Shown in pieces: positions 6,504-58,833 of a stretch of 64,000 nt of DNA; position 1 is the stretch's first letter, and each line of letters begins with the position of its first letter. The notes beneath the pieces were generated by a model. The model had not been told where the DNA came from. It ran no database searches and was given only the letters and a program-made list of their open reading frames with translations. The stretch lies in sequence record MN988561.1. One strand, 5' to 3'. Both the position numbers and the translations under genes were made by a program.

Positions 6504-7376
6504 ATGAGCATGCAGTTGGATACTTTGTTCCCGTATAAATTCCTTCACGACTACTGGTACTCTCAAGGGAGTATCATTCACTTCGGTCGTCAGTACTGGA
6601 AGCAGTACGGATTCTGGAAGGTCGACGGTAAGATTCTTGTACGCGTCGATATGGAAGGTCAGGAGATACTCCCTCTCGAGACAGATACCATTCCCACGAA
6701 TCCACGAGGATGGCATCTCGTCCATAAGGTACCAAATCGGTTTATCGTCCAACCTGCTCTGATCTCCTACAATGCTAAGGCACTCGAGATCTATATGCTC
6801 GAGCCTGATGAAGTCGTCATCGAACGTGAACGACTTGCAGAGGAAGATCGTCAACGTCGGATCCGTGAGTACGATGAATGGTATGAAGCTGCAACTCCTC
6901 TGATGAGGAAAATGAGAGGATTCGACTGGTCGTTCAAGATGGCGGATCAGTCCTACCCTGACAAGTATCGTCAAGAGGATGAGATCATAGCAGAGCTCGA
7001 GACTCTTCCATACGAAGAAGCACTTGATCTCATGGCTAAGTATGGTGGAGGTCAGACTGATGGATCTGATAAGCCAGATTATCGGAAATGCCCTGGATTC
7101 AAGTATCCAGATGTAGCTCTCGTATCCTATAACTACAAGGATCACAAGAAGGATTGCTGGGATAAGTGGTCTCTGGTCCGTAATGGAGTTGAGGATGTGA
7201 TCTATGATGGTCCAGCTCGTCGCTACAAATACGAGACAGATCATCTTGGGATCATCTTTGAGAAGTATCTCAAGACTGGTCTCATCACTCTCGATACTCC
7301 CATCTTCACTGAAGGTCGTCAATGGTCGACCGTAGGTGGACTTGAACAATTCAAGCAGAAGGATCAGGTAGCATGA
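6504..7376 (+). CDS. Hypothetical protein (290 aa)
   Basis: First ORF after motif copy 2, AGGAG SD. Confidence 0.75.
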   Translation: MSMQLDTLFPYKFLHDYWYSQGSIIHFGRQYWKQYGFWKVDGKILVRVDMEGQEILPLETDTIPTNPRGWHLVHKVPNRFIVQPALISYNAKALEIYMLEPDEVVIERERLAEEDRQRRIREYDEWYEAATPLMRKMRGFDWSFKMADQSYPDKYRQEDEIIAELETLPYEEALDLMAKYGGGQTDGSDKPDYRKCPGFKYPDVALVSYNYKDHKKDCWDKWSLVRNGVEDVIYDGPARRYKYETDHLGIIFEKYLKTGLITLDTPIFTEGRQWSTVGGLEQFKQKDQVA

Positions 7377-13980: not shown

Positions 13981-14559
13981 ATGACGCAGATTGCAGAAGA
14001 ATTCCAGAAGATTGGTCTCATCTCGGAGAAGATGAAGAACGATCTCGAGCTCGATCTTGACGAGCAGTTCATGGTCGGTCTGGAACTTGGTAACAAGTAC
14101 GACCTCGTGAGCTGGGGATCCTTCAATGAGTTCATCAAACCGACTCTGAAGAATTTCTTCAAGGAGTACGTCAACTATCGGTTCTCGATCGGGATCGTAA
14201 TCCTCCGTGAAGATCTCGAAAGGATCCTGATTCGGATTCTTGAGGAGCGCTGCAAGGGAGTTATCGCTACGACCTGCAAGGCTAAGAAAATCAATCCCTT
14301 CCAGATTCGAGAAATCGAGAAGGATAAGGGATTGACGATGGGAATCGTCCGAGGCATTCGTGTCTTCAAGAAGCGTCGTAAGTTGATCGTGAAAGAAGAC
14401 CAGATCCTCCAGTACGATTCTCAGCTTCGCTCGGTCAACATCGTCTACCTCTGGGAGATGGTGAAGAAGGTCCGTCAGGATATGGAGAAGGCTAATCGCG
14501 ATCTCGTCGCATCCTTCGATCCTTCCAAGATCACTCGAGTAGAAGTGGCTAAGAAGTAA
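13981..14559 (+). CDS. Hypothetical protein, first gene after motif copy 4
   Basis: GGAG SD then ATG 13981 (the track start 13945 lies inside the motif). Confidence 0.75.
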   Translation: MTQIAEEFQKIGLISEKMKNDLELDLDEQFMVGLELGNKYDLVSWGSFNEFIKPTLKNFFKEYVNYRFSIGIVILREDLERILIRILEERCKGVIATTCKAKKINPFQIREIEKDKGLTMGIVRGIRVFKKRRKLIVKEDQILQYDSQLRSVNIVYLWEMVKKVRQDMEKANRDLVASFDPSKITRVEVAKK

Positions 14560-17848: not shown

Positions 17849-18172
17849 ATGTCGACTTCTGTTACAACTGCGACGTACTACGTAGCCAAGACGAAGGCTA
17901 CTCGTACTCGTGACGATCAAGTCCTCAAGCACAATATCGGTGATGAGTTCACTCTCGTCGCTGGTGAGTGGATTGGTATGGATGGTTATCGTATGCCTGG
18001 ATGGACTGAGTATCTTCCTGCCAAGTTCCCTCTCCTCATCAATGCGATGGACTACATCAAGCATCTTCCTGGAGAGATGTACGGATTCAAGGTGATCCCT
18101 GATACGGTCAGTTTCAGTAAGGTCACGGTAACGACTACGACTGAAGAAGAGGAGGTCACTCTCGATGCCTAG
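17849..18172 (+). CDS. Hypothetical protein, first gene after motif copy 5
   Basis: AAGGAG SD then ATG 17849. Confidence 0.75.
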   Translation: MSTSVTTATYYVAKTKATRTRDDQVLKHNIGDEFTLVAGEWIGMDGYRMPGWTEYLPAKFPLLINAMDYIKHLPGEMYGFKVIPDTVSFSKVTVTTTTEEEEVTLDA

Positions 18173-21068: not shown

Positions 21069-21401
21069 ATGGAAATGTTCGCAGTTTATGCTCGTACGAC
21101 GAAGGATGGTACCGATCATATCGAAATGTATGAACGGAAGCAGGATCGCAACTTCGTCGAGACCATGGACCAGATGTCCAAGAACTATGGTCACAAGATG
21201 CACAAGGCTCAGGTCTTCGAATCGGAGGAGAATCTTCGTGAGTGGGTCAAAAAGGAACTCGGTGCTAACTGGATCACGCTCCTGGACAAGACGATCGAAG
21301 ATCAGAAGAAGGACCATCGTCTGAAGGGCAATCGTGGTGACACGGCTCCTCAGAAGGCAGCTGATGCCAAGAAGGATTCTGGTCAGTCTGCAAGCAGGTG
21401 A
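21069..21401 (+). CDS. Hypothetical protein, monocistronic after motif copy 6
   Basis: AAGGAG SD; bounded by the motif and the terminator at 21426. Confidence 0.75.
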   Translation: MEMFAVYARTTKDGTDHIEMYERKQDRNFVETMDQMSKNYGHKMHKAQVFESEENLREWVKKELGANWITLLDKTIEDQKKDHRLKGNRGDTAPQKAADAKKDSGQSASR

Positions 21402-26641: not shown

Positions 26642-27282
26642 TGAGGGTTGGCCTTGCGATTAAAGGAGAGTCAAATGTCAGGTAGTGTGTTCGTATTTAA
26701 AGCAGGAGTCAAGGAATTCGAGAGTCTGTGCGAGCAGATGGAAACTCAGGATGTTGACTTCGTCGTCCGTGTCGATATCAATCAGAACAAGACTCTGCTT
26801 GTTGATGATCTGATCATCGCTCACCTTGTAGGTGAGGAATCTCACATCTACCTTAACATCTGAGGAGACGGTCATGGCACTTGGTCATACGATCTTCGAG
26901 TACTCTGCATTTGTACTCGAGAGAAACAAGATGAAACTCTCGAATGTAGATCTTGCGACTACACTTCAGCAGATTTACTATACGGATCTGACTGTCTACG
27001 GATACACTGGAGTTCTGCTCAAGGACGAGAATGAGAAGGATGTCATTATCCACGATATCGTTCTTCAGGATGAGCAGTCGTTCTTCAATCACACAGGATA
27101 TGTCCGACTTCCTGAACTACTCTCAAAATATCACAGTCTCTTGAATAAGACGATCGGACATGATTTCGTCAAGTTACATTATCGAGACGGAAGATGGTAT
27201 GATCCTGCTGAGCTTACAAGCATGCCAGGATATGTCGATGCTGCACTTCTGGAGTATCTGAGAAAATGTGACTATTAACGCT

Positions 27283-29564: not shown

Positions 29565-30930
29565 CGTCGTGGGGATGCCTTCCTAACCATCAAGCATTAA
29601 AGGACATAAGATGCTTAAACTCATTGAAGCTCAGAATTCCACTAACTTCGTCAACGAGATCATCGCTGGTATCTTCCAGTCGAATGTGGTGGAATCTGAT
29701 CTGCAAGAAGAACTGAGTGCGCTGAGTGATGAGTTCGCGACTTCGTTCTTCTGCATGGCAGTTGAGGGACTGTCTTTCTGGACGTACGTAGGAACTCGTA
29801 AGTCCTGGGAGATCTGCGGTCATACGATCTTGACCAAGGAGATTCTTGGGATTCTGAATTCCTAAGTTCGATCGTTAATGCTCCCTATCAATCCTGGTAG
29901 GGAGTTGTCCCTCTAACTTACTAAGGTAAGATGATGCAATTAGATGTTGCTCTATTTGAATCCCACCGTATCGCTGTCATAACGAAGGCGATCATCGATT
30001 GTGGTCGAGTTAATGGAGCATTGATGTTCCAATTGATCGACTCTGAGGAAGAGTTTCTCATTGTCGATCCGCAGTTGATCATTACCGTAGGTCCTCATCG
30101 TCTCTCTGGAGTTGATGAAATGACCTGCGTACGTAACTACGACGCTCTGAAAGTCAACCTGAATACTCTCCGAGTCGTCAGAGTCCACTAATCCTGTAAT
30201 CCTCCAAATCCGTTTAACTCATAGGAGAATTAAAATGTCGAAATGGAATTCACTCTCTGGTCTCATCCAGACTCATGGTCTCAAGAATCTCCGATTCTTC
30301 TTCGAGACAACGATGCCTACGAAGAAGTTCTTCGGACTGGTCACGATCTCTGAGCCATTCAGTCAGAGGTACGTCGTCGAAGGTCGAGCTATTCGTTCGA
30401 TCAAAGATGGGAAGATCTTCCTCCGTACTCTCGACAAGAAGTACGCATCTCTGAACTTCCATGTCTCGGATCTGGAGATGCTCAGTTCATCATTCCCTGA
30501 TCGTTACTACGTGATGGTCGGGAATGTCAAGTACAATCTCGGAGAGGATCTCACTCTTCCAGTTCTTGAGGAGGCATGAAATGTCTGCAGTAGTCGCTCG
30601 TCTCAAGTCGATCGATATCGACAATACGGACAATCTCTTCTCAGGAGCATTCAAGCTTCTGATCGCAGGAGTAGGATTCCGTACTGAAGATAACAAGTTC
30701 TATGAAGTCTTCTCGCACTATGGAGATTACTGCGGGAAGATACCGACCTACATGGTCAACTCTCTTCAAGCTCATCTGAAGAGACAGTACCAATTACTGT
30801 CTGAGAAGATTCCGTACAATCCTTCTCATGAACGTGATAACCTGACGTACGGATGGATGAATCTTGTTCCATTCGATAAGGTCGAAGATATGATGGAATT
30901 TTATGCTGACAAGCCACTGGAGATCGCATA

Positions 30931-31784: not shown

Positions 31785-32058
31785 CCAAGGAGAATTGTCG
31801 TGGAAATCGCAGATTTAAAGTTCGTTGACAAGGAAGTCAACAACTGGATGTACGAGTGGGGACGTAATTGTGCCACCATGTTGTACTCCAAGGAGACTAC
31901 TCAGAAAGTCCTCGAAGGATGGCAGACTGAGACTCATCAGTTCAGTGCTGACGATGTCGATCAGTACTGGGTAGGATTCAATGAGGGTCCTCGTGAGACG
32001 CAGGAGATCTTGGTGATCCCTCCTCATGTGACTCCAGGTATCAATAAGGAGATTTGAA

Positions 32059-35510: not shown

Positions 35511-36215
35511 ATGCGTAAGTATAATATTGCACTGGCAGCTGCATACTCGCTCTCTGCCGTACTCTTTTCCTCAACTGCATCTGCTGCTACATGTGGTGGT
35601 CAGGCATGGTCATGGAAATCCTTCCTGAGTGGTGGATGCTCACCATCAGGTGTATCCAATCCTGGAGATAACAAGCCTCAGCCTGGAGTACGTGGATCGG
35701 TACGTACTGTCCCGAGTGGATTCGCTCCTTCGAATGGATCATCTCCGTCGACATCTCCATCGACTGGCGTCTCTGATCCTGGTACCGATAATCCTGGTGG
35801 CGATGATCATGGAAATGATAATCCCGGACATGACAATCCGGGTGGTGATCACAATGACGATGGTCACAACGATAATGGCGACAATGGCAACCATGACAAC
35901 GATGATAATGGGAACCATAACGGTGACGACAATGGTCACAATAATGATCATGGAGATCATGATGGTGACAATGACTCTGGCAACAATGGTCATGACAATG
36001 ATCATAACGGTCCATCTGGCGATCATAACAATGATGGCCATAACGACAATGGCCAGGATAATGGTCACGGTCAGGATCAGTCTGGTAACAACGATAATGG
36101 CGGCGATCAGCCTTCTAATAATGAAGGCTCGAACAATGATCACGACAACAACCATAATGACAATGGTCACGGTAATGACGATAATGGTGGCAAGGGACCA
36201 GGCAAAGGTAAGTAG
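35511..36215 (+). CDS. Secreted Gly/His/Asp/Asn-rich low-complexity protein
   Basis: Sec signal MRKYNIALAAAYSLSAVLFSSTASA; two Cys; about 140 aa of GHDN-type imperfect repeats. Confidence 0.8.
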   Translation: MRKYNIALAAAYSLSAVLFSSTASAATCGGQAWSWKSFLSGGCSPSGVSNPGDNKPQPGVRGSVRTVPSGFAPSNGSSPSTSPSTGVSDPGTDNPGGDDHGNDNPGHDNPGGDHNDDGHNDNGDNGNHDNDDNGNHNGDDNGHNNDHGDHDGDNDSGNNGHDNDHNGPSGDHNNDGHNDNGQDNGHGQDQSGNNDNGGDQPSNNEGSNNDHDNNHNDNGHGNDDNGGKGPGKGK

Positions 36216-36271: not shown

Positions 36272-36923
36272 GTCTGGAGGTCATATGAGAATAATAATGG
36301 TGGTAGTATACGTCCTCATATCACTAGGATTCTATACTACGCTTGGTACGATTGATCCGTCTAAGCAGACTGAGGCAGTTATCCGATCACTACTCTGGCC
36401 ATTGGAATTTGGTAGACAGATTGGTGAGAAATCGAAGGAGTATCGAAATGTGGATGGAAACGATTAAAGCTATCGGAATGTTTATCATACTACCGATAGT
36501 TCTACTCATGGTAGGTGCAGTGATAATTCAGAGTATACCTCAAGCTGATGCTGCATCAGGGTCTGTTCAGATTCTCACAGTACCTGGTCAGTCGAATATC
36601 GTCTGCATGACCAGAGGTGGTAATACTCTTTCATGCGTGAAGGTCTAATCAATGCAAGACGTTACTAAGACTAACATGTGGAAGATCAAGGCTATGAAGT
36701 TGCAAGCTGATATCCTGATGATGGACATGTTCAAACAATTGATCGAGACTCAGGATGAATTTGGTAATCCTATTCGAATCATCCAACCTCAGATTCTCAC
36801 GACCTACGAACATTTTACGATCATAGGTGTTGATGAGAAAGCACTATTAGAAGAAGGACGTGAAGAGCCTATCATGCTTTATCATGACTGGTACATGACG
36901 TATGAAGTTAAGGATAGAATTCT

Positions 36924-42477: not shown

Positions 42478-42759
42478 ATGTTAAATATCAACAGGACATA
42501 TTATGCTCTGATCACAGAGAGTGGAGACATTCTCAAGGGATCTCAATCAATGCTGAATGGATTGTATGACTCTCATGCTAAAGCTACTAGGTACAAGAAA
42601 TCTCTCATTGATAAAGCTAAGCCGTTCAGTAGTCAAAGTACTAGTCCTCACAAACATCTGTGGGATCCTAGGAATACAGCAGAATGGGATAAGACTCTGG
42701 AGACGTATGAGTCTCTTGAAGTCACTCCTGTCAAGATTGTAAAGGATAAGGTAGAATGA
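42478..42759 (+). CDS. Small protein, paralog of 41703..41936
   Basis: YYAL...NGLYDS..KA..Y...VTPVKIV. Confidence 0.6.
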   Translation: MLNINRTYYALITESGDILKGSQSMLNGLYDSHAKATRYKKSLIDKAKPFSSQSTSPHKHLWDPRNTAEWDKTLETYESLEVTPVKIVKDKVE

Positions 42760-43035
42760 TCCGAGGACGTAAGAGTATCAAGAATGCAGCGACTGATGAG
42801 TGGATGAAAGAATGGGGTAGTCTGGAAGGACCTGGATATCCTGTCTGGAAGTTGTACGACATCCCTGAGATCATGAGTACTGCTAGTCGAATCATGGACG
42901 CTACTCGTAAGGAGTACGTCAAGAAATCCAAGAGTAACGATCTACCACAAGTATCATATATGCTGCAAGCTAATGATGAAGGTGTGTATGTCGAGTATGA
43001 GATCCGATAGTAAAGAAAATAAAGTCGTAGCAAAA

Positions 43036-43076
43036 TGGGGTCGATCGACGTCTTCGAGAGATTCTTCTTTGGAGGG
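43036..43076 (+). promoter_or_regulatory. Motif copy 11 (degenerate upstream box) with A-tracts
   Basis: TGGGGTCGATC-13nt-GATTCTTCTTTGGAGGG; AAAGAAAATAAA and CAAAA upstream. Confidence 0.68.
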
Positions 43077-43122
43077 TCGCTGGTCGGTCCTTCTAGAGAA
43101 TTGTCTTTGATTGGAGATTGTG

Positions 43123-43731
43123 ATGTCGGTGCTGCTGGAATTTGAGGGTCCTTCGATTGGATCCAAGAAGAATTGGTTGACTCTGGATCTTGAGACTGAA
43201 AAGATCTTCGGATCTTTCTCATGGGAATCTGGTGAGAAGAATGGTCGTCGATGGCGTCCCTATGCTTGTGGAATTGGCCACCAATCGGATCGTCTCCTGG
43301 AAATCAAAGTCTTCTCTTCGTTCGATGAGCAAGAAATGGCCGACTGGATCTCCGAGTCCTTGGTGATTCTCGGTGGAAATGTCCAGGATGTGGTCTTTCA
43401 GAATTCGAGAAATCGGTTCGATGAAATGGTCTGCTCCGGACGGTTCATAAATGCTCGTCGTCCTCCAACTCGTCTCCCTGGATCCTGGCCAATTGTCTCG
43501 ACTGATCCTGTGATGGTCTGGAAGAAAACTCCTCGGACTGATCGGATTCCAATTCCAAGAAATGAGGTGGATGGGATTGGTGGTTCTGCTGATCTCGTCC
43601 GTCGTGGAGATCTGGATCCTCTCCGCCATTGTGGTCGGGATGTTCTTGAGAATCTCTGGAATCTCGAGGATTGTCCTTCTCTTCCTCCTGAGTGGGTCGA
43701 CTTCTGGAAATCTCCATTCTCTGCTTCCTGA
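43123..43731 (+). CDS. Hypothetical protein encoded by an almost TA-free gene
   Basis: GGAG SD at 43113 then ATG 43123; only 2 TA dinucleotides in 609 nt; a single Tyr. Confidence 0.75.
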   Translation: MSVLLEFEGPSIGSKKNWLTLDLETEKIFGSFSWESGEKNGRRWRPYACGIGHQSDRLLEIKVFSSFDEQEMADWISESLVILGGNVQDVVFQNSRNRFDEMVCSGRFINARRPPTRLPGSWPIVSTDPVMVWKKTPRTDRIPIPRNEVDGIGGSADLVRRGDLDPLRHCGRDVLENLWNLEDCPSLPPEWVDFWKSPFSAS

Positions 43732-43742
43732 TTCTGAGTCCT

Positions 43743-43772
43743 GGGCCATGACTTAAAACTGGTCCCTATTTT
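43743..43772 (+). terminator. Conserved-loop hairpin / terminator
   Basis: GGGCCA-TGACTTAAAAC-TGGTCCC then TATTTT. Confidence 0.6.
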
Positions 43773-43791
43773 CATAGCTAAAGGTAAGATC

Positions 43792-44268
43792 ATGACACTT
43801 GAAGAAGTCCTCGAGACTAAGAAATACTATATCAATTCTCTTCGTGAGTACTCTCGTAAGCAGGTAGATCTATGGAGACAGGTACCATGGCTAGCTCTGC
43901 AGGCTCAAGGTAGATCTGGATGGTCTGACGCATATGGTCGATGTATCCGTAATGGTATCTGGACAATTAACTCTGCTACCAATGGAGGATATTGTGCTAC
44001 GTCAGTCGACTGTGATTCAGGTGAATTGATGTACTTCAATAAGCCTATGCGTGACAACTGTAAAGAATTGATGCTGATCGATCCTAAGGAACTGGATGCA
44101 AGTCTTGTAATCGCATACCTGAATCAACGTATCCTGAATGACAAGGAGGATCACTCAATTAAGCAGAAGGGTCCTACGTGGAGAAAGGATACTGCTGAGG
44201 AGCTAGGTATCGAGAGAGTATATCACAGGACTCGTACGATCCCTGAACCGTCATGGAGTTACGACTAA
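43792..44268 (+). CDS. Hypothetical protein
   Basis: ORF track, + strand. Confidence 0.65.
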   Translation: MTLEEVLETKKYYINSLREYSRKQVDLWRQVPWLALQAQGRSGWSDAYGRCIRNGIWTINSATNGGYCATSVDCDSGELMYFNKPMRDNCKELMLIDPKELDASLVIAYLNQRILNDKEDHSIKQKGPTWRKDTAEELGIERVYHRTRTIPEPSWSYD

Positions 44269-44328: not shown

Positions 44329-44840
44329 TCCGGATCGTCTGGGTCCTCTGGAAAAGGAGAATCGTATGTCAATGGCTGTGTCTCTGTATCGTGCTAAGTT
44401 TTCTAGCAAGTTCGCAGGATCTGGTGAGTTCCCGATCTATGCTTTGAACTTGAAGGATGCTGAGGATCGTGCTGAGAAGATCTTCTTCCTCATGAATGTG
44501 AAGGTCGATGGTGATACCTTCACATCTGAAGTCGCTCTGGTTGAATTCTGAGGAGAACGATCTTGTACATTAATGGTTGGATGACCAATGTCAATGTGAG
44601 TGAGATCGCTCAGACCAAGAAGTTCATCGAGGAGAACGATGGTCTCGATCTCAAGGTCGATACAACTGGTGCTAATGGTCCTGAGTACAAGTGGACCCAG
44701 TACTGCGATGACGATGAGGACATGGTGAAGATCGCTGCGGTCATGATGTTCTACAACGATCGTAGTCCTGAGCAGATCGAGGAGTTCAAATCTGATCTCC
44801 GTGAACTGATGAAGAAGTATCCACGTGTATAACTCAATCT

Positions 44841-46147: not shown

Positions 46148-46570
46148 ATGGAAATGTTCGCTATCGTTGCTGCTAATGAAAGATCCTCTCAGCCGATCCG
46201 CAAGACTGGTCAGGAGACGATCTGGGGACTTGATGATGTGAAGAGGATCAAGCAGTTCAAGACTGCTAAGAAGGCTCAAGAGTTCATCGACGAGAAGTTG
46301 TCCTGGGATGGGTACTCCTTCGAGGTTGTACCGATGTCTGAAGTTCACAAGTACTACTGGATCAATCGTGAACTCAGTCAGGACGCTTCGATGGTAGCAA
46401 TGTTCTCCGACAAGATCAAGAAGTTCCGTGAGCTGGTCGAGGATGCTACCAAGCAAGGTGATGTGAATCGTGCTGCCTATCTCAATAGCGTTATCCGCGA
46501 CAGTCTCTTCCGGATCATCGGATCTGGTCAGACTGAAGAGGAATTCCACTACTCCGGTATCGCTCGCTAA
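46148..46570 (+). CDS. Hypothetical protein, monocistronic after motif copy 13
   Basis: TAAGGAG SD; followed by the conserved-loop hairpin at 46582. Confidence 0.75.
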   Translation: MEMFAIVAANERSSQPIRKTGQETIWGLDDVKRIKQFKTAKKAQEFIDEKLSWDGYSFEVVPMSEVHKYYWINRELSQDASMVAMFSDKIKKFRELVEDATKQGDVNRAAYLNSVIRDSLFRIIGSGQTEEEFHYSGIAR

Positions 46571-46682: not shown

Positions 46683-49600
46683 CTTGAAGAACCAGCCCAG
46701 AGAATTGTCTTTAAGGAGAAATGCAATGAACAAGATTTCTGAAGTAGTCCGCGATGTTGAGTTCACCTTTTATTGCACTGGTGGATTCCGTACGAAGGAC
46801 ATGACAATCTTCGCTAAAATTGATCAGCACTTCTTCAATGAAATCTGTGCTCGTCAGTACGCTAACTTTCCTAAGCAGCTTCCTCTGAAAGGTAAGGAGA
46901 CTGCTGATGGTGTACTGATCGGATGGCTCGATTACAAGAAGAATCGGTACCATGCTGAAACGACTATCGGTCATGCAATGTACTACAATCGCCTTCGCGA
47001 TACAGTCTAAGGAGAATATGTAATGGCTGATAAGTCAAAGGATAAGGATCGTGAGAAGAGATCTCGTCGTTATGCTGATCTCGTCTCGAGATTCTACTCT
47101 CGTCAGGTAGAAGGAGACTTGGATAAGTCTCTGGTCAATGCTTACATCTCCAGTCAGTCTGCTCCGTCAATGGATCTCGTTGACGTGATGGATGCTATTG
47201 TCGCGTATGGTGATGCGAGAGTAGCTGAAGCTAAGCAGAAATGGAAAGGATCTAAGTGATGGCTAAGAAGTATTCTCGTAGCGAGCAGGTTTATGCTATC
47301 GCTAATCTCTTGATCGTACTCGGTCAAGAGAAATCAATTGTGGATCTGATGAATCAGGTTCTCGCCTATCCTGACTTGACGACGGATGATGATCTCGAGA
47401 TTTATCTCAGAGCGATGATCAAGCCTGTCGAGTCTGACTGGAAACTCAAAGGATCCAAGACGAAGATGGACGATGAAGTAATCGTCGAAGTCGATCCTTA
47501 TCTCGAAGGGATTAAGAATCGTGGACAGTAATAAAATGAATCTCGTAGCAGAGTCTCCTGAAGAGAAGATGGAGAATCTCGCTCATGAAATCTGGGCAGT
47601 AGCTCAGACATCTCCAGGTGAAGGTATCGAGGATGGAGTACAGCGTATCCTCGATCTTCTGAAGGAGACTGTCATCATGAAGATGGATGATAAGGATATG
47701 GATATCGAGAATGACCCTACCTGGGATGAGTTCGAGATTCCTCGTCCTCCTAAGGAGTGGAAGTGATGGCACATTCAGTTGATCGTCAGGAAGATGGTAC
47801 CATTGTCGTCACATGGGATAATGGACGTAAGACTGTACGTACTGCTAAGTTCAGCAGTGACTCTATCATGCGTACGGATCCTCTTGGTGGACTAGTGAAG
47901 GATCATACGGACGAGGAGATCTTCGCCTATGCTCAGTACTCCATCAAGGCGATCCGTAAGATGAAGAGATCAATGAAGGGATTATTGTAATGGTTTATCA
48001 TGCGGTTGAGGCTCATCGAATTGCATGTCACTATGCTAATGAGATGACGGACATCGAGTACCCTGATGTTGTTCATGTGACAGATACTCGTGACTCTCAT
48101 GAGTACTGGCTGAAGATGTACGACGAGAAGATTCTGGAGCAGATGAAGAAGTCTGTCATGGAGGAGAATAACAATGGCTGACTATCTCCGACTCTATCGT
48201 CCTGAAGGTAAGGGAGTATGTCTCGAGTTTGCTCGTGCGAACGACTATGAGACTGCTACCAAGTTCGCTGATCTCTTCAAGGAGATCATGCCTAAGAAGT
48301 TCAACTGGTTTCATCAAGGTGGATATACCTCCAGTGGTGAACCATCGGACTGGCATCTCTTTGAATTCTGGGGATATGATAGTAATCCTCTCAGGATCCG
48401 ATGCTACTGTGTAGTCCTGGCGGACATGTTGGGACTATCGCTGATGATCCATGACTCTGCAGGAGAGGCTGTGACGATATGATCAAGATATACATTCAAC
48501 GTATAGGCTCTCAGAGCGGTGACCACCTTATTCAGGAGATTCCTGAAGAAATAAAGATCAAGGATTGTCATGTAGATCTCGAGAGACTGTTCCAGAGTGT
48601 CTACAATCTTGGTCGACGTGATGAGCGTGATGAGATCAATAGCGATCTCATTCAATTAATGAACAGGAGACGTTAAGATGATTTATCGTGTATGGTACTG
48701 GTCGTCCAATGGATACTGGAAGCATTTTCAGGATCATGAGAAGGTCGAAGCTGCAAATGAGTGCATGGCGATCTTGATGAGATCTGATAGTCTCAAGCCT
48801 GGACTGATGCATATCGTTCCTAAGAATCATCCGTTCACTGATCGTGTCGTTGACATGACTGAAAACTTCTACATTCCTGAGGATGGTGAGGACTTCGTAC
48901 CTTCTGAAGGTCAGATCATCTACGGTCAGAAAGCGATTGATGCATTCAATCCGACGTTCAATGTCGTCAGTAAAAAGTCCTCATGGTCTCCAATGGTAAG
49001 GAAGTACGACTGGTGATTGAAGAAACTCACAAGAATCATCCTGGAGTGACTGCTAGTGAATGTCCTGCCAGGATCACTGTTAATGCTCAGCCATCTTCCA
49101 ACCATGGCAGTGGATACGCATGTAGTGTAACTGGTGGTCATTGCATACCATCATCTGACTGTGATGCTCGGAGAAAGATCTGGAGGGATCATAATGAAGT
49201 TCAAACGTGAATTCTATACTGTTGAGGATAGCACAGGTAAGCTGATCCTCATTCGAGATGAGATCGGATCGTACATCTTCATGTTGAAGGAAGTGATCGA
49301 ACGTCTCGAACTCCAGGATCAGATCGTAATGGACTCTGATCGTCGGCATCTTGTAGGAGTCTGTGTAGATTGGCATCTACCTACTCCGAAGATCGTACCT
49401 GTGTCCGTCGAAGTTGAGATCGTTGTCAAGGAGTCTGCATAATGTGGAAGTGGCTATGTGGATTCTTTGGTTCATTCGAGGATCCTATTGTTGCATCAGA
49501 GGATCCGTCTGTTCCGACATTCGTCACATGTTCGTACAACTACGTGCATCGTGACAATTCGAATAAGATCCATTTCTGGAGTCATCCGTACAGACATCCG

Positions 49601-58792: not shown

Positions 58793-58833
58793 TAGGTTCA
58801 CTTAAGGTCCTGGAGGGATTCTTCTTTGAAGGG
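58793..58833 (+). promoter_or_regulatory. Bipartite motif copy 15
   Basis: TAGGTTCACTT-13nt-GATTCTTCTTTGAAGGG. Confidence 0.82.

Follow-up and report, generated by a model that had tools for sequence, protein, structure and literature searches.

The gene EVB64_108 of Rhizobium phage RHph_TM61 (TM61) has lost nearly every TA dinucleotide, a depletion that has no equal elsewhere in the genome, is maintained by selection and is accompanied by a strong sense-strand bias in other short words. The stretch analysed, hereafter the window, comprises bases 1–64000 of record MN988561.1 (202,964 bp) and shares its coordinates. TM61 belongs to the genus Cuauhnahuacvirus of the Kleczkowskaviridae and was isolated on R. 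etli NXC12. The open reading frame (ORF) at 43123–43731 encodes 202 amino acids annotated as a hypothetical protein, lies within a long series of small + strand genes and is a genuine accessory gene in a variable part of that series. Tentatively, we regard selection on its transcript against RNA cleavage at UpA as the best explanation of the loss.

The ORF contains TA only at 43261 and 43448, has no TAC, ACA or GTA and nine TGT, spells all six threonine codons as ACT and encodes a single tyrosine. This recount agrees throughout with a preliminary description of the same DNA, which had likewise correctly counted six TA in the line 43801–43860 of the next gene. Counts in 609-nt windows across the 64 kb amount to 38 ± 8.2 TA, 15 being the lowest after that of this locus. 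The ratio of observed to expected TA (o/e) at EVB64_108 is 0.054, compared with 0.83 ± 0.13 in 600-nt windows of the whole 203-kb genome (next lowest 0.38; genome mean 0.82–0.83), and is the lowest among 308 ORFs, the runner-up being at 0.35. EVB64_027, the gene in the next lowest 600-nt window, is not a paralogue. No further TA-free island was found in the remainder of TM61 or in the first 50 kb of the sister phage TM30, and no TA o/e under 0.09 in 522 kb of other DNA that was scanned. The literature searched yielded no earlier description of a TA-free phage gene, which is not proof of absence.

The depletion is significant against codon- and amino-acid-matched controls. When the same protein was encoded with the codon usage of the phage, 23.3 ± 3.7 TA were expected against the two observed, and shuffling of the gene's own codons among synonymous sites gave 10.9 ± 2.0, with a minimum of 4 in 5000 shuffles. 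No T|A codon junction is present, although the base composition at third and first positions predicts 15.6 (Poisson 1.7e-7); the genome-wide T|A junction ratio is 0.92 ± 0.22. Chance and codon usage are thus ruled out as the cause by two codon-aware nulls and the junction test. By codon phase, one TA remains at positions 1-2, one at positions 2-3, where phage usage predicts about 9, and none at positions 3-1. The codons GTA, TTA and CTA are never used and ATA is used once, although about nine such codons would be predicted from phage usage, and tyrosine makes up 0.5% of the residues compared with 4.8% in the phage. As all three phases have been purged, the cause must be independent of the reading frame and of the ribosome, and the scarcity of tyrosine indicates that the purge has cost amino-acid changes.

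The TA-poor zone (Table 1) extends past the ORF, including the leader and reaching the loop of the downstream hairpin; between 43031 and 43745, three TA are observed where the background density of the window predicts 45.2. Since codon junctions and the 3' untranslated stretch are affected as well, the purge acts on the nucleic acid, beyond codon choice. The zone is nested in a 769-bp cassette whose limits are defined by insertions and deletions, with TA at 43020 and 43028 before it and again from the hairpin loop onward. Upstream of the gene, the cassette carries one of the 14 copies, in the window's + strand, of a motif that consists of a box, a 17-nt core about 25 nt downstream and, usually, a G+C-rich hairpin and a ribosome-binding site. 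The cassette's box keeps all invariant columns of alignment A4, is the sole copy to depart at three near-invariant (at least 90%) columns, and lacks TA, which all but one of the other copies have in the box. In addition, three other copies carry a TA-containing version at the place of the Shine-Dalgarno-like GGAG, followed by AGGAGA, and the ribosome-binding region of the cassette is without that TA.

Only one close relative of EVB64_108 was found in 5.8 billion proteins and 50,697 phage records, EVB97_110 of phage RHph_Y65 (Y65), with 87% amino-acid identity. Between the two ORFs, 92 of the 609 bases are different (15% divergence) and there are no insertions or deletions. Codon positions 1/2/3 account for 23/17/52 of the differences; among codons, 37 differ synonymously and 26 non-synonymously. 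This substitution pattern, together with 56 distant homologues described below, rules out that the ORF is an artefact of open frames in TA-free DNA. The Y65 ORF also contains two TA, one in the same tyrosine codon and one moved by one base. Random replacement at the 92 sites would give 12.3 ± 2.7 TA, and setting the 63 differing codons to the Y65 residue with a random synonymous codon would give 10.7 ± 2.5; two or fewer were reached in 0/5000 trials by either procedure. The retention of two TA in Y65 despite 92 differences means that the purge is maintained by selection, and the constraint on TA in this gene is therefore continuous.

The comparison also bears on the long antisense frames that cross the cassette, open for 177 codons in TM61 and 245 in Y65 (43016–43800, minus strand). 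TA could in principle be avoided in order to keep an overlapping antisense frame open, TAA and TAG on the sense strand or TTA and CTA on the complement being the words concerned. This is extremely unlikely, because such a frame would need the avoidance of one TA phase, yet all three are purged, and because the TM61/Y65 differences, in the phase of the longest frame, fall mainly at its first codon position, unlike the pattern of a coding sequence. As for the other antisense frame, its third positions coincide with those of the sense gene, and it is hence uninformative. We read the long antisense frames as by-products of the TA loss, which is how the preliminary description had explained the pile-up of open frames at this place.

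A profile-free search of 1.84 billion representatives, in which every sequence was scored directly, found 56 homologues of about 200 residues, and the homologue DNA came from viral and soil metagenome contigs. The closest outside homologues (P0002 and its close relatives P0058 and P0059, about 45–47% identity) have TA o/e values of 0.55–0.82, with 0.78 for the closest, at 47% identity. A homologue is the lowest-TA ORF in 3/32 distinct loci, compared with 4.8 expected by chance, which rules out TA depletion as a trait of the entire family; if anything, TA is slightly more abundant in homologues than in neighbouring ORFs, and the low T|A junction ratios of a few homologues equal those of the flanking genes. 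One distant homologue (L005 3914–4537; 28% identity), on a 61-kb viral contig, has 5 TA in 624 nt, a TA o/e of 0.15 against 0.49 in its flanks, and is among the TA-poorest windows of the 522 kb scanned; its low TA could be due to chance or be a second case.

Synonymous codon choice in EVB64_108 follows the preference of the phage except at TA-containing codons. Phage-like codon usage and homologues of normal TA content together indicate that the purge arose within the TM61/Y65 phage lineage. The preliminary description had considered horizontal acquisition from a TA-poor donor, and the composition of the cassette, present or absent among close relatives and with a gene of 49.6% G+C in a window of 43.0%, would agree with a recent transfer. 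An inherited composition is nevertheless very unlikely, given the codon choice, the normal TA of the closest outside homologues and a leader that has the phage's own repeated motif. Moreover, searches of plasmids and of bacterial contigs, one genome per species, yielded no relative. According to the passages of PMC11282364, the spread of TpA o/e among bacterial genomes is narrow and driven by G+C, with a median below 0.78; a value of 0.05 is, in our own judgement, far outside that spread, those passages giving no lower bound.

Other words, too, are depleted on the sense strand. When EVB64_108 was compared with 196 other genes, each of at least 100 codons, its sense-strand ratios AC/GT, AG/CT, CA/TG and A/T were the lowest of all 197 (z -4.3, -4.1, -4.5 and -3.9, respectively), whereas GA/TC, AA/TT and G/C were ordinary. 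The A residues of the sense strand mostly follow G or A and precede A or T. The secondary depletions are independent of the TA loss, with 10 AC against 23.6 expected and 21 AG against 39.9, CA being more weakly affected, and none of the 20 serine codons is of the AGY type. This strand bias favours a strand-specific target and hence an RNA-level cause, as the preliminary description had argued from a sense-strand asymmetry. That description had also singled out ACA and TAC as avoided words. Both are indeed absent, with 3.2 ACA expected from phage usage (P=0.02) and 1.1 from the gene's own codons (P=0.26), and 4.5 or 1.9 TAC on the same two bases, but neither is significantly avoided independently of the TA loss; the scarcity of TA, AC and CA largely accounts for their absence. 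GATC or GANTC methylation sites, also considered, show an enrichment of under twofold.

The pattern of surviving adenines raises the alternative of an adenine-directed enzyme, such as a deaminase, that the sense strand or mRNA avoids or by which it has been mutated. Such an enzyme would target A after a pyrimidine or before C or G, sparing A where G or A precedes it and A or T follows; TA, CA, AC and AG are depleted and GA, AA and AT spared accordingly, TG, GG and CG are enriched, and in two of the three deviations in the motif box, G replaces the A, or the T next to A, of other copies. We nonetheless consider it improbable. The TM61/Y65 differences comprise 48 transitions and 44 transversions without an A/G excess, and GC is not enriched, though changes from AC to GC should enrich it. 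A single burst of mutation is excluded, since the protein is under purifying selection and TA is still absent after 15% divergence.

A second alternative is avoidance of the TpA step in the DNA duplex. TpA steps matter for the binding of silencers and for -10 elements. The duplex might lack TpA to escape a nucleoid-type silencer with a preference for AT-rich, TpA-containing DNA, to be free of promoter-like -10 elements in both strands, or to withhold a target from a nuclease or transposase directed at TA. TA is palindromic, all TA-containing trinucleotides are equally absent with no flank specificity, the zone takes in the degenerate upstream box, where TA is the rule in the other copies, and the cassette looks mobile and lies at a hypervariable spot, all of which would suit such a cause. 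It is, however, unlikely, because a duplex-level cause does not predict the strongly strand-specific depletion of AC, AG and CA. Furthermore, the remaining genome, at 43% G+C, is rich in TA, so that a 0.7-kb patch would protect nothing else, and TA returns inside the cassette at both ends.

A cause that is independent of frame, continuous, specific to one lineage and biased to the sense strand is best fitted by selection on the transcript against UpA cleavage, which we advance tentatively. Purifying selection, acting on the nucleic acid and still continuing in the TM61/Y65 lineage, would have stripped nearly every UpA from the transcript, and partly also CpA, ApC and ApG. The agent would most likely be a ribosome-independent endoribonuclease that cuts single-stranded RNA at UpA, with a host toxin or abortive-infection ribonuclease (RNase), or an RNase active in infection, as candidates, and a UpA-free transcript would remain translatable as other messenger RNAs are cut. 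There are toxin RNases whose short cleavage sites contain UA or AC, and a transcript from which the recognition site has been engineered away continues to be translated (PMC5408214). EVB64_108 resembles these engineered transcripts in being a coding sequence freed of a short nuclease word through synonymous or near-synonymous choice, but it is natural, its word is the dinucleotide UA, whose removal forces amino-acid changes, and its cognate nuclease is hypothetical. In the passages of PMC11282364, RNase preference for UpA is a leading explanation for TpA being generally scarce. EVB64_108 involves this dinucleotide and this hypothesis as well, and a mild scarcity pervades the phage (0.82–0.83) and is stronger in the genes next to the motif (0.55); the magnitude at EVB64_108 (0.054) and its restriction to one gene are of another order than any genome-wide bias.

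Several points weigh against a transcript-level cause. TA is self-complementary, so that the main signal alone cannot separate an RNA cause from a DNA cause. The TA-poor zone starts inside the upstream motif box and, if the box is a promoter, this part of the zone may be upstream of the transcription start. TA is also scarce in the leaders of the other copies, and because of this the leader of the cassette adds little statistical weight. No special structure of the EVB64_108 messenger was detected (z 0.02 against dinucleotide shuffles), and the annotation of the phage includes DNA nucleases and an SNase-like protein and no RNase of known UA specificity. We know of no UA-specific RNase in the hosts. 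The toxin specificities in PMC5408214 do not account for the depletion of AG, and nothing shows why this one gene alone, among 375 annotated features in the record, should be protected.

The protein product had no match in Pfam, NCBIfam or PHROG, and PADLOC and Pfam gave single chance-level hits at most. The search with 27 aligned members against Pfam, NCBIfam and PHROG, and that of the PDB by sequence and by the 27-sequence profile, found nothing. Alignment A2 of these 27 sequences contains the invariant residues D22, E24, D100, H169 and D173, in addition to K27, W44, G106, F108, R112 and W122. An AlphaFold2 model based on that alignment reached a predicted local distance difference test (pLDDT) of 90.7 and a predicted template modelling (pTM) score of 0.88, and places D-x-E on a strand and H-x3-D in the C-terminal helix, with the intervening D preceded by an aromatic residue, as in DEDD motifs; we infer the clustering of the five residues from the modelled topology. 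A Foldseek search of predicted viral structures (BFVD) retrieved polymerase B of an uncultured podovirus (E 7e-4, template modelling (TM) score 0.52), an RNase_H-superfamily protein (TM 0.50) and several polymerase B exonuclease domains. Against the PDB nothing was found at E<=1e-3; the best TM score, 0.45, was to the Pol delta catalytic subunit, and the better-scoring weak matches were mostly RNase H-like or polymerase exonuclease structures (Prp8, RuvX, Pol delta, Pol alpha, RNase D and integrases).

On the basis of the invariant residues and the modelled fold, we read the product as a stand-alone DEDDh-type exonuclease-like protein with a predicted RNase H-like fold. The five residues occur in the order D-x-E, D, H-x3-D, as in the DEDD (DnaQ-like) 3'-5' exonucleases and the exonuclease domain of family B polymerases. 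In contrast to family B DNA polymerases, the protein has about 200 residues and stands alone, without a polymerase, and its likeness to DEDD exonucleases lies in residues and model, there being no sequence match in Pfam, NCBIfam, PHROG or PDB and none to a curated superfamily sequence profile (DEDD/DnaQ-like). Regarding genomic context, the neighbours of the homologues vary (lysis enzymes, Rho_N-domain proteins, UvrD helicase) and include no conserved partner gene.

The preliminary description had proposed an immediate-early anti-toxin or anti-defence gene with a nuclease-proof messenger. Of that proposal, a real, maintained and strand-biased UA purge that acts on the nucleic acid is supported, whereas the specificity for ACA and TAC is not, nor is the antitoxin identity, as no antitoxin or defence family was matched and the protein appears exonuclease-like. 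T4 Dmd, which acts against RnlA (PMC5408214), exemplifies the niche envisaged, that of a phage product acting while a host RNase is active; no sequence or fold likeness of the EVB64_108 product to any antitoxin or defence-related family was found, and it looks nuclease-like rather than inhibitor-like.

A more specific and rather doubtful proposal is that EVB64_108 has a natural nuclease-proof messenger, a counter-defence exonuclease-like enzyme of the phage being kept translatable through UpA removal during an RNA-degrading response of the host. The protein would then be needed while the RNase is active, and might, for example, degrade a nucleic acid or oligonucleotide that serves that response as signal or substrate. 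If so, the gene would be the first natural counterpart of the engineered site-free transcripts and would provide a sequence signature for finding such genes in phages, and the other genes driven by the upstream motif would show a weaker form of this adaptation. Avoidance of short words is well known genome-wide, for restriction sites and for TpA, and a near-total purge in one gene is a far sharper signal. Should the cause be RNA cleavage, the signature would point to a UA-directed RNase during Rhizobium phage infection, mark this unannotated exonuclease-like family as a candidate for a counter-defence function and offer a sequence-only route to genes expressed under nuclease attack. Should it lie in the DNA, it would imply strong local selection on the TpA step.

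The 14 motif cores start at about 51, 6442, 13929, 17803, 20970, 26628, 29548, 31767, 43060, 44312, 46089, 46665, 58817 and 62472. The motif is probably a promoter or the leader of one gene class and does not look like a sigma-70 promoter. Eleven other first genes behind motif copies (83–355, 6504–7376, 13981–14559, 17849–18172, 21075–21401, 26675–26863, 29611–29865, 31800–32057, 44366–44551, 46154–46570 and 46726–47010) have a median TA o/e of 0.55, compared with 0.75 in 137 other ORFs (Mann-Whitney P=5.6e-4). At codon junctions, T|A pooled over the eleven reaches 0.67 of expectation (80 against 119.1), compared with 0.87 in the others; 11/11 lie below expectation, and tyrosine content is normal in these genes. 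As motif-proximal genes are mildly TA-poor, TA avoidance appears linked to a class of expression, with EVB64_108 as its extreme. The motif and the TA-poor genes behind it thereby give a handle on the transcription programme of a little-studied phage family. The copy at 58817 is preceded by a T-rich run, a possible terminator tail.

At the cassette itself, the scan called neither a sigma-70-type promoter nor an intrinsic terminator, and a promoter-like word just upstream (43015–43036) is not repeated within the window. The fold of the leader is not conserved between TM61 and Y65, and no Rfam family was matched. The stem-loop downstream of the gene (43743–43765, -11.4 kcal/mol) is no better than shuffles (z +0.79), and its sequence is identical in Y65. 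The idea of a stand-alone unit bounded by an upstream motif and a hairpin is thus borne out by the indel boundaries, but not by clear signals, the motif copy being degenerate, the hairpin weak and the terminator scan empty. Likewise, immediate-early expression is not supported, as the motif copy deviates at three near-invariant positions.

Table 1 Features of the EVB64_108 cassette and its surroundings, in window coordinates
Feature	Position	Strand	Remarks
Indel-defined cassette, 769 bp	43016-43784		Junctions from three-way alignment of TM61, Y65 and TM30
TA-poor zone, 724 nt	43030-43753	+	TA at 43094, 43261 and 43448 only; ~45 expected from rest of window
Degenerate motif copy	43035-43075	+	Box 43035-43046, core 43059-43075; core differs from search pattern at 2/17
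Shine-Dalgarno-like GGAG	43113-43116	+	6 nt upstream of ATG, read from sequence
EVB64_108 ORF	43123-43731	+	Protein-coding, under purifying selection; product predicted to be DEDDh exonuclease-like
Exo I-like motif, D22-L-E24 codons	43186-43194	+	D22 and E24 invariant; strand of residues 18-34 in model
Exo II-like, D100 codon	43420-43422	+	D100 invariant; F99 and E101 at least 90% conserved; start of helix 99-104
Exo III-like motif, H169-x3-D173 codons	43627-43641	+	Both residues invariant; C-terminal helix 165-182 in model
Weak hairpin and T-rich run, possible terminator	43743-43773	+	6-bp stem (one G-U), 11-nt loop

The 769-bp cassette is common to TM61 and Y65 and missing in TM30, TM40, TM2_3B, TM3_3_6, TM39 and TM21B; blastn coverage in the six sister phages is 52%. 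TM61 and TM30 are 98–99% identical over 1–50 kb, where 43010–43781 is among just three TM61-specific segments. The other two are 2107–2420, in place of which TM30 has a Seg-like homing endonuclease gene, and 36335–36573. The cassette site is a hypervariable spot with three gene arrangements in near-identical phages (window 42756–43792, L002 1557–2990 and L003 1556–2010): TM30 has a 186-nt ORF, TM61 the cassette only, and Y65 an extra 195-nt ORF, the 186-nt ORF and the cassette. The two copies of the cassette are mosaic, with 15–38% divergence per 60-nt bin in the first two thirds and near identity over the last ~130 nt and the 3' flank, which points to recombination within EVB64_108. No homing endonuclease domain (HNH, GIY-YIG, LAGLIDADG or similar) was found in its product; homing endonuclease genes are present elsewhere in the same phage group.

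In T4-type phages, hyperplastic regions hold cassettes of accessory genes that are shuffled at regulatory repeats. The EVB64_108 cassette resembles these in containing a small gene that has a repeated element of its own upstream and a hairpin downstream, and in its presence or absence among near-identical genomes, and differs from them in its degenerate regulatory copy and weak hairpin.

The upstream neighbour, EVB64_107 (42756–43010, 84 amino acids), has a weak, sub-threshold Pfam match to a RelA/SpoT region (E 0.036, 14.8 bits, cut-off 27) that is too short for a judgement. Elsewhere, the annotation of the phage includes a Rho-like termination factor, about 23 transfer RNA genes with homing endonuclease genes scattered between them, a TROVE (Ro-like) protein and an RNA polymerase beta'-like protein (window 35511–36215; L072, record 129034–142134, 140434–142002 and 155268–158651), which suggest that the phage has an RNA biology and a transcription programme of its own.

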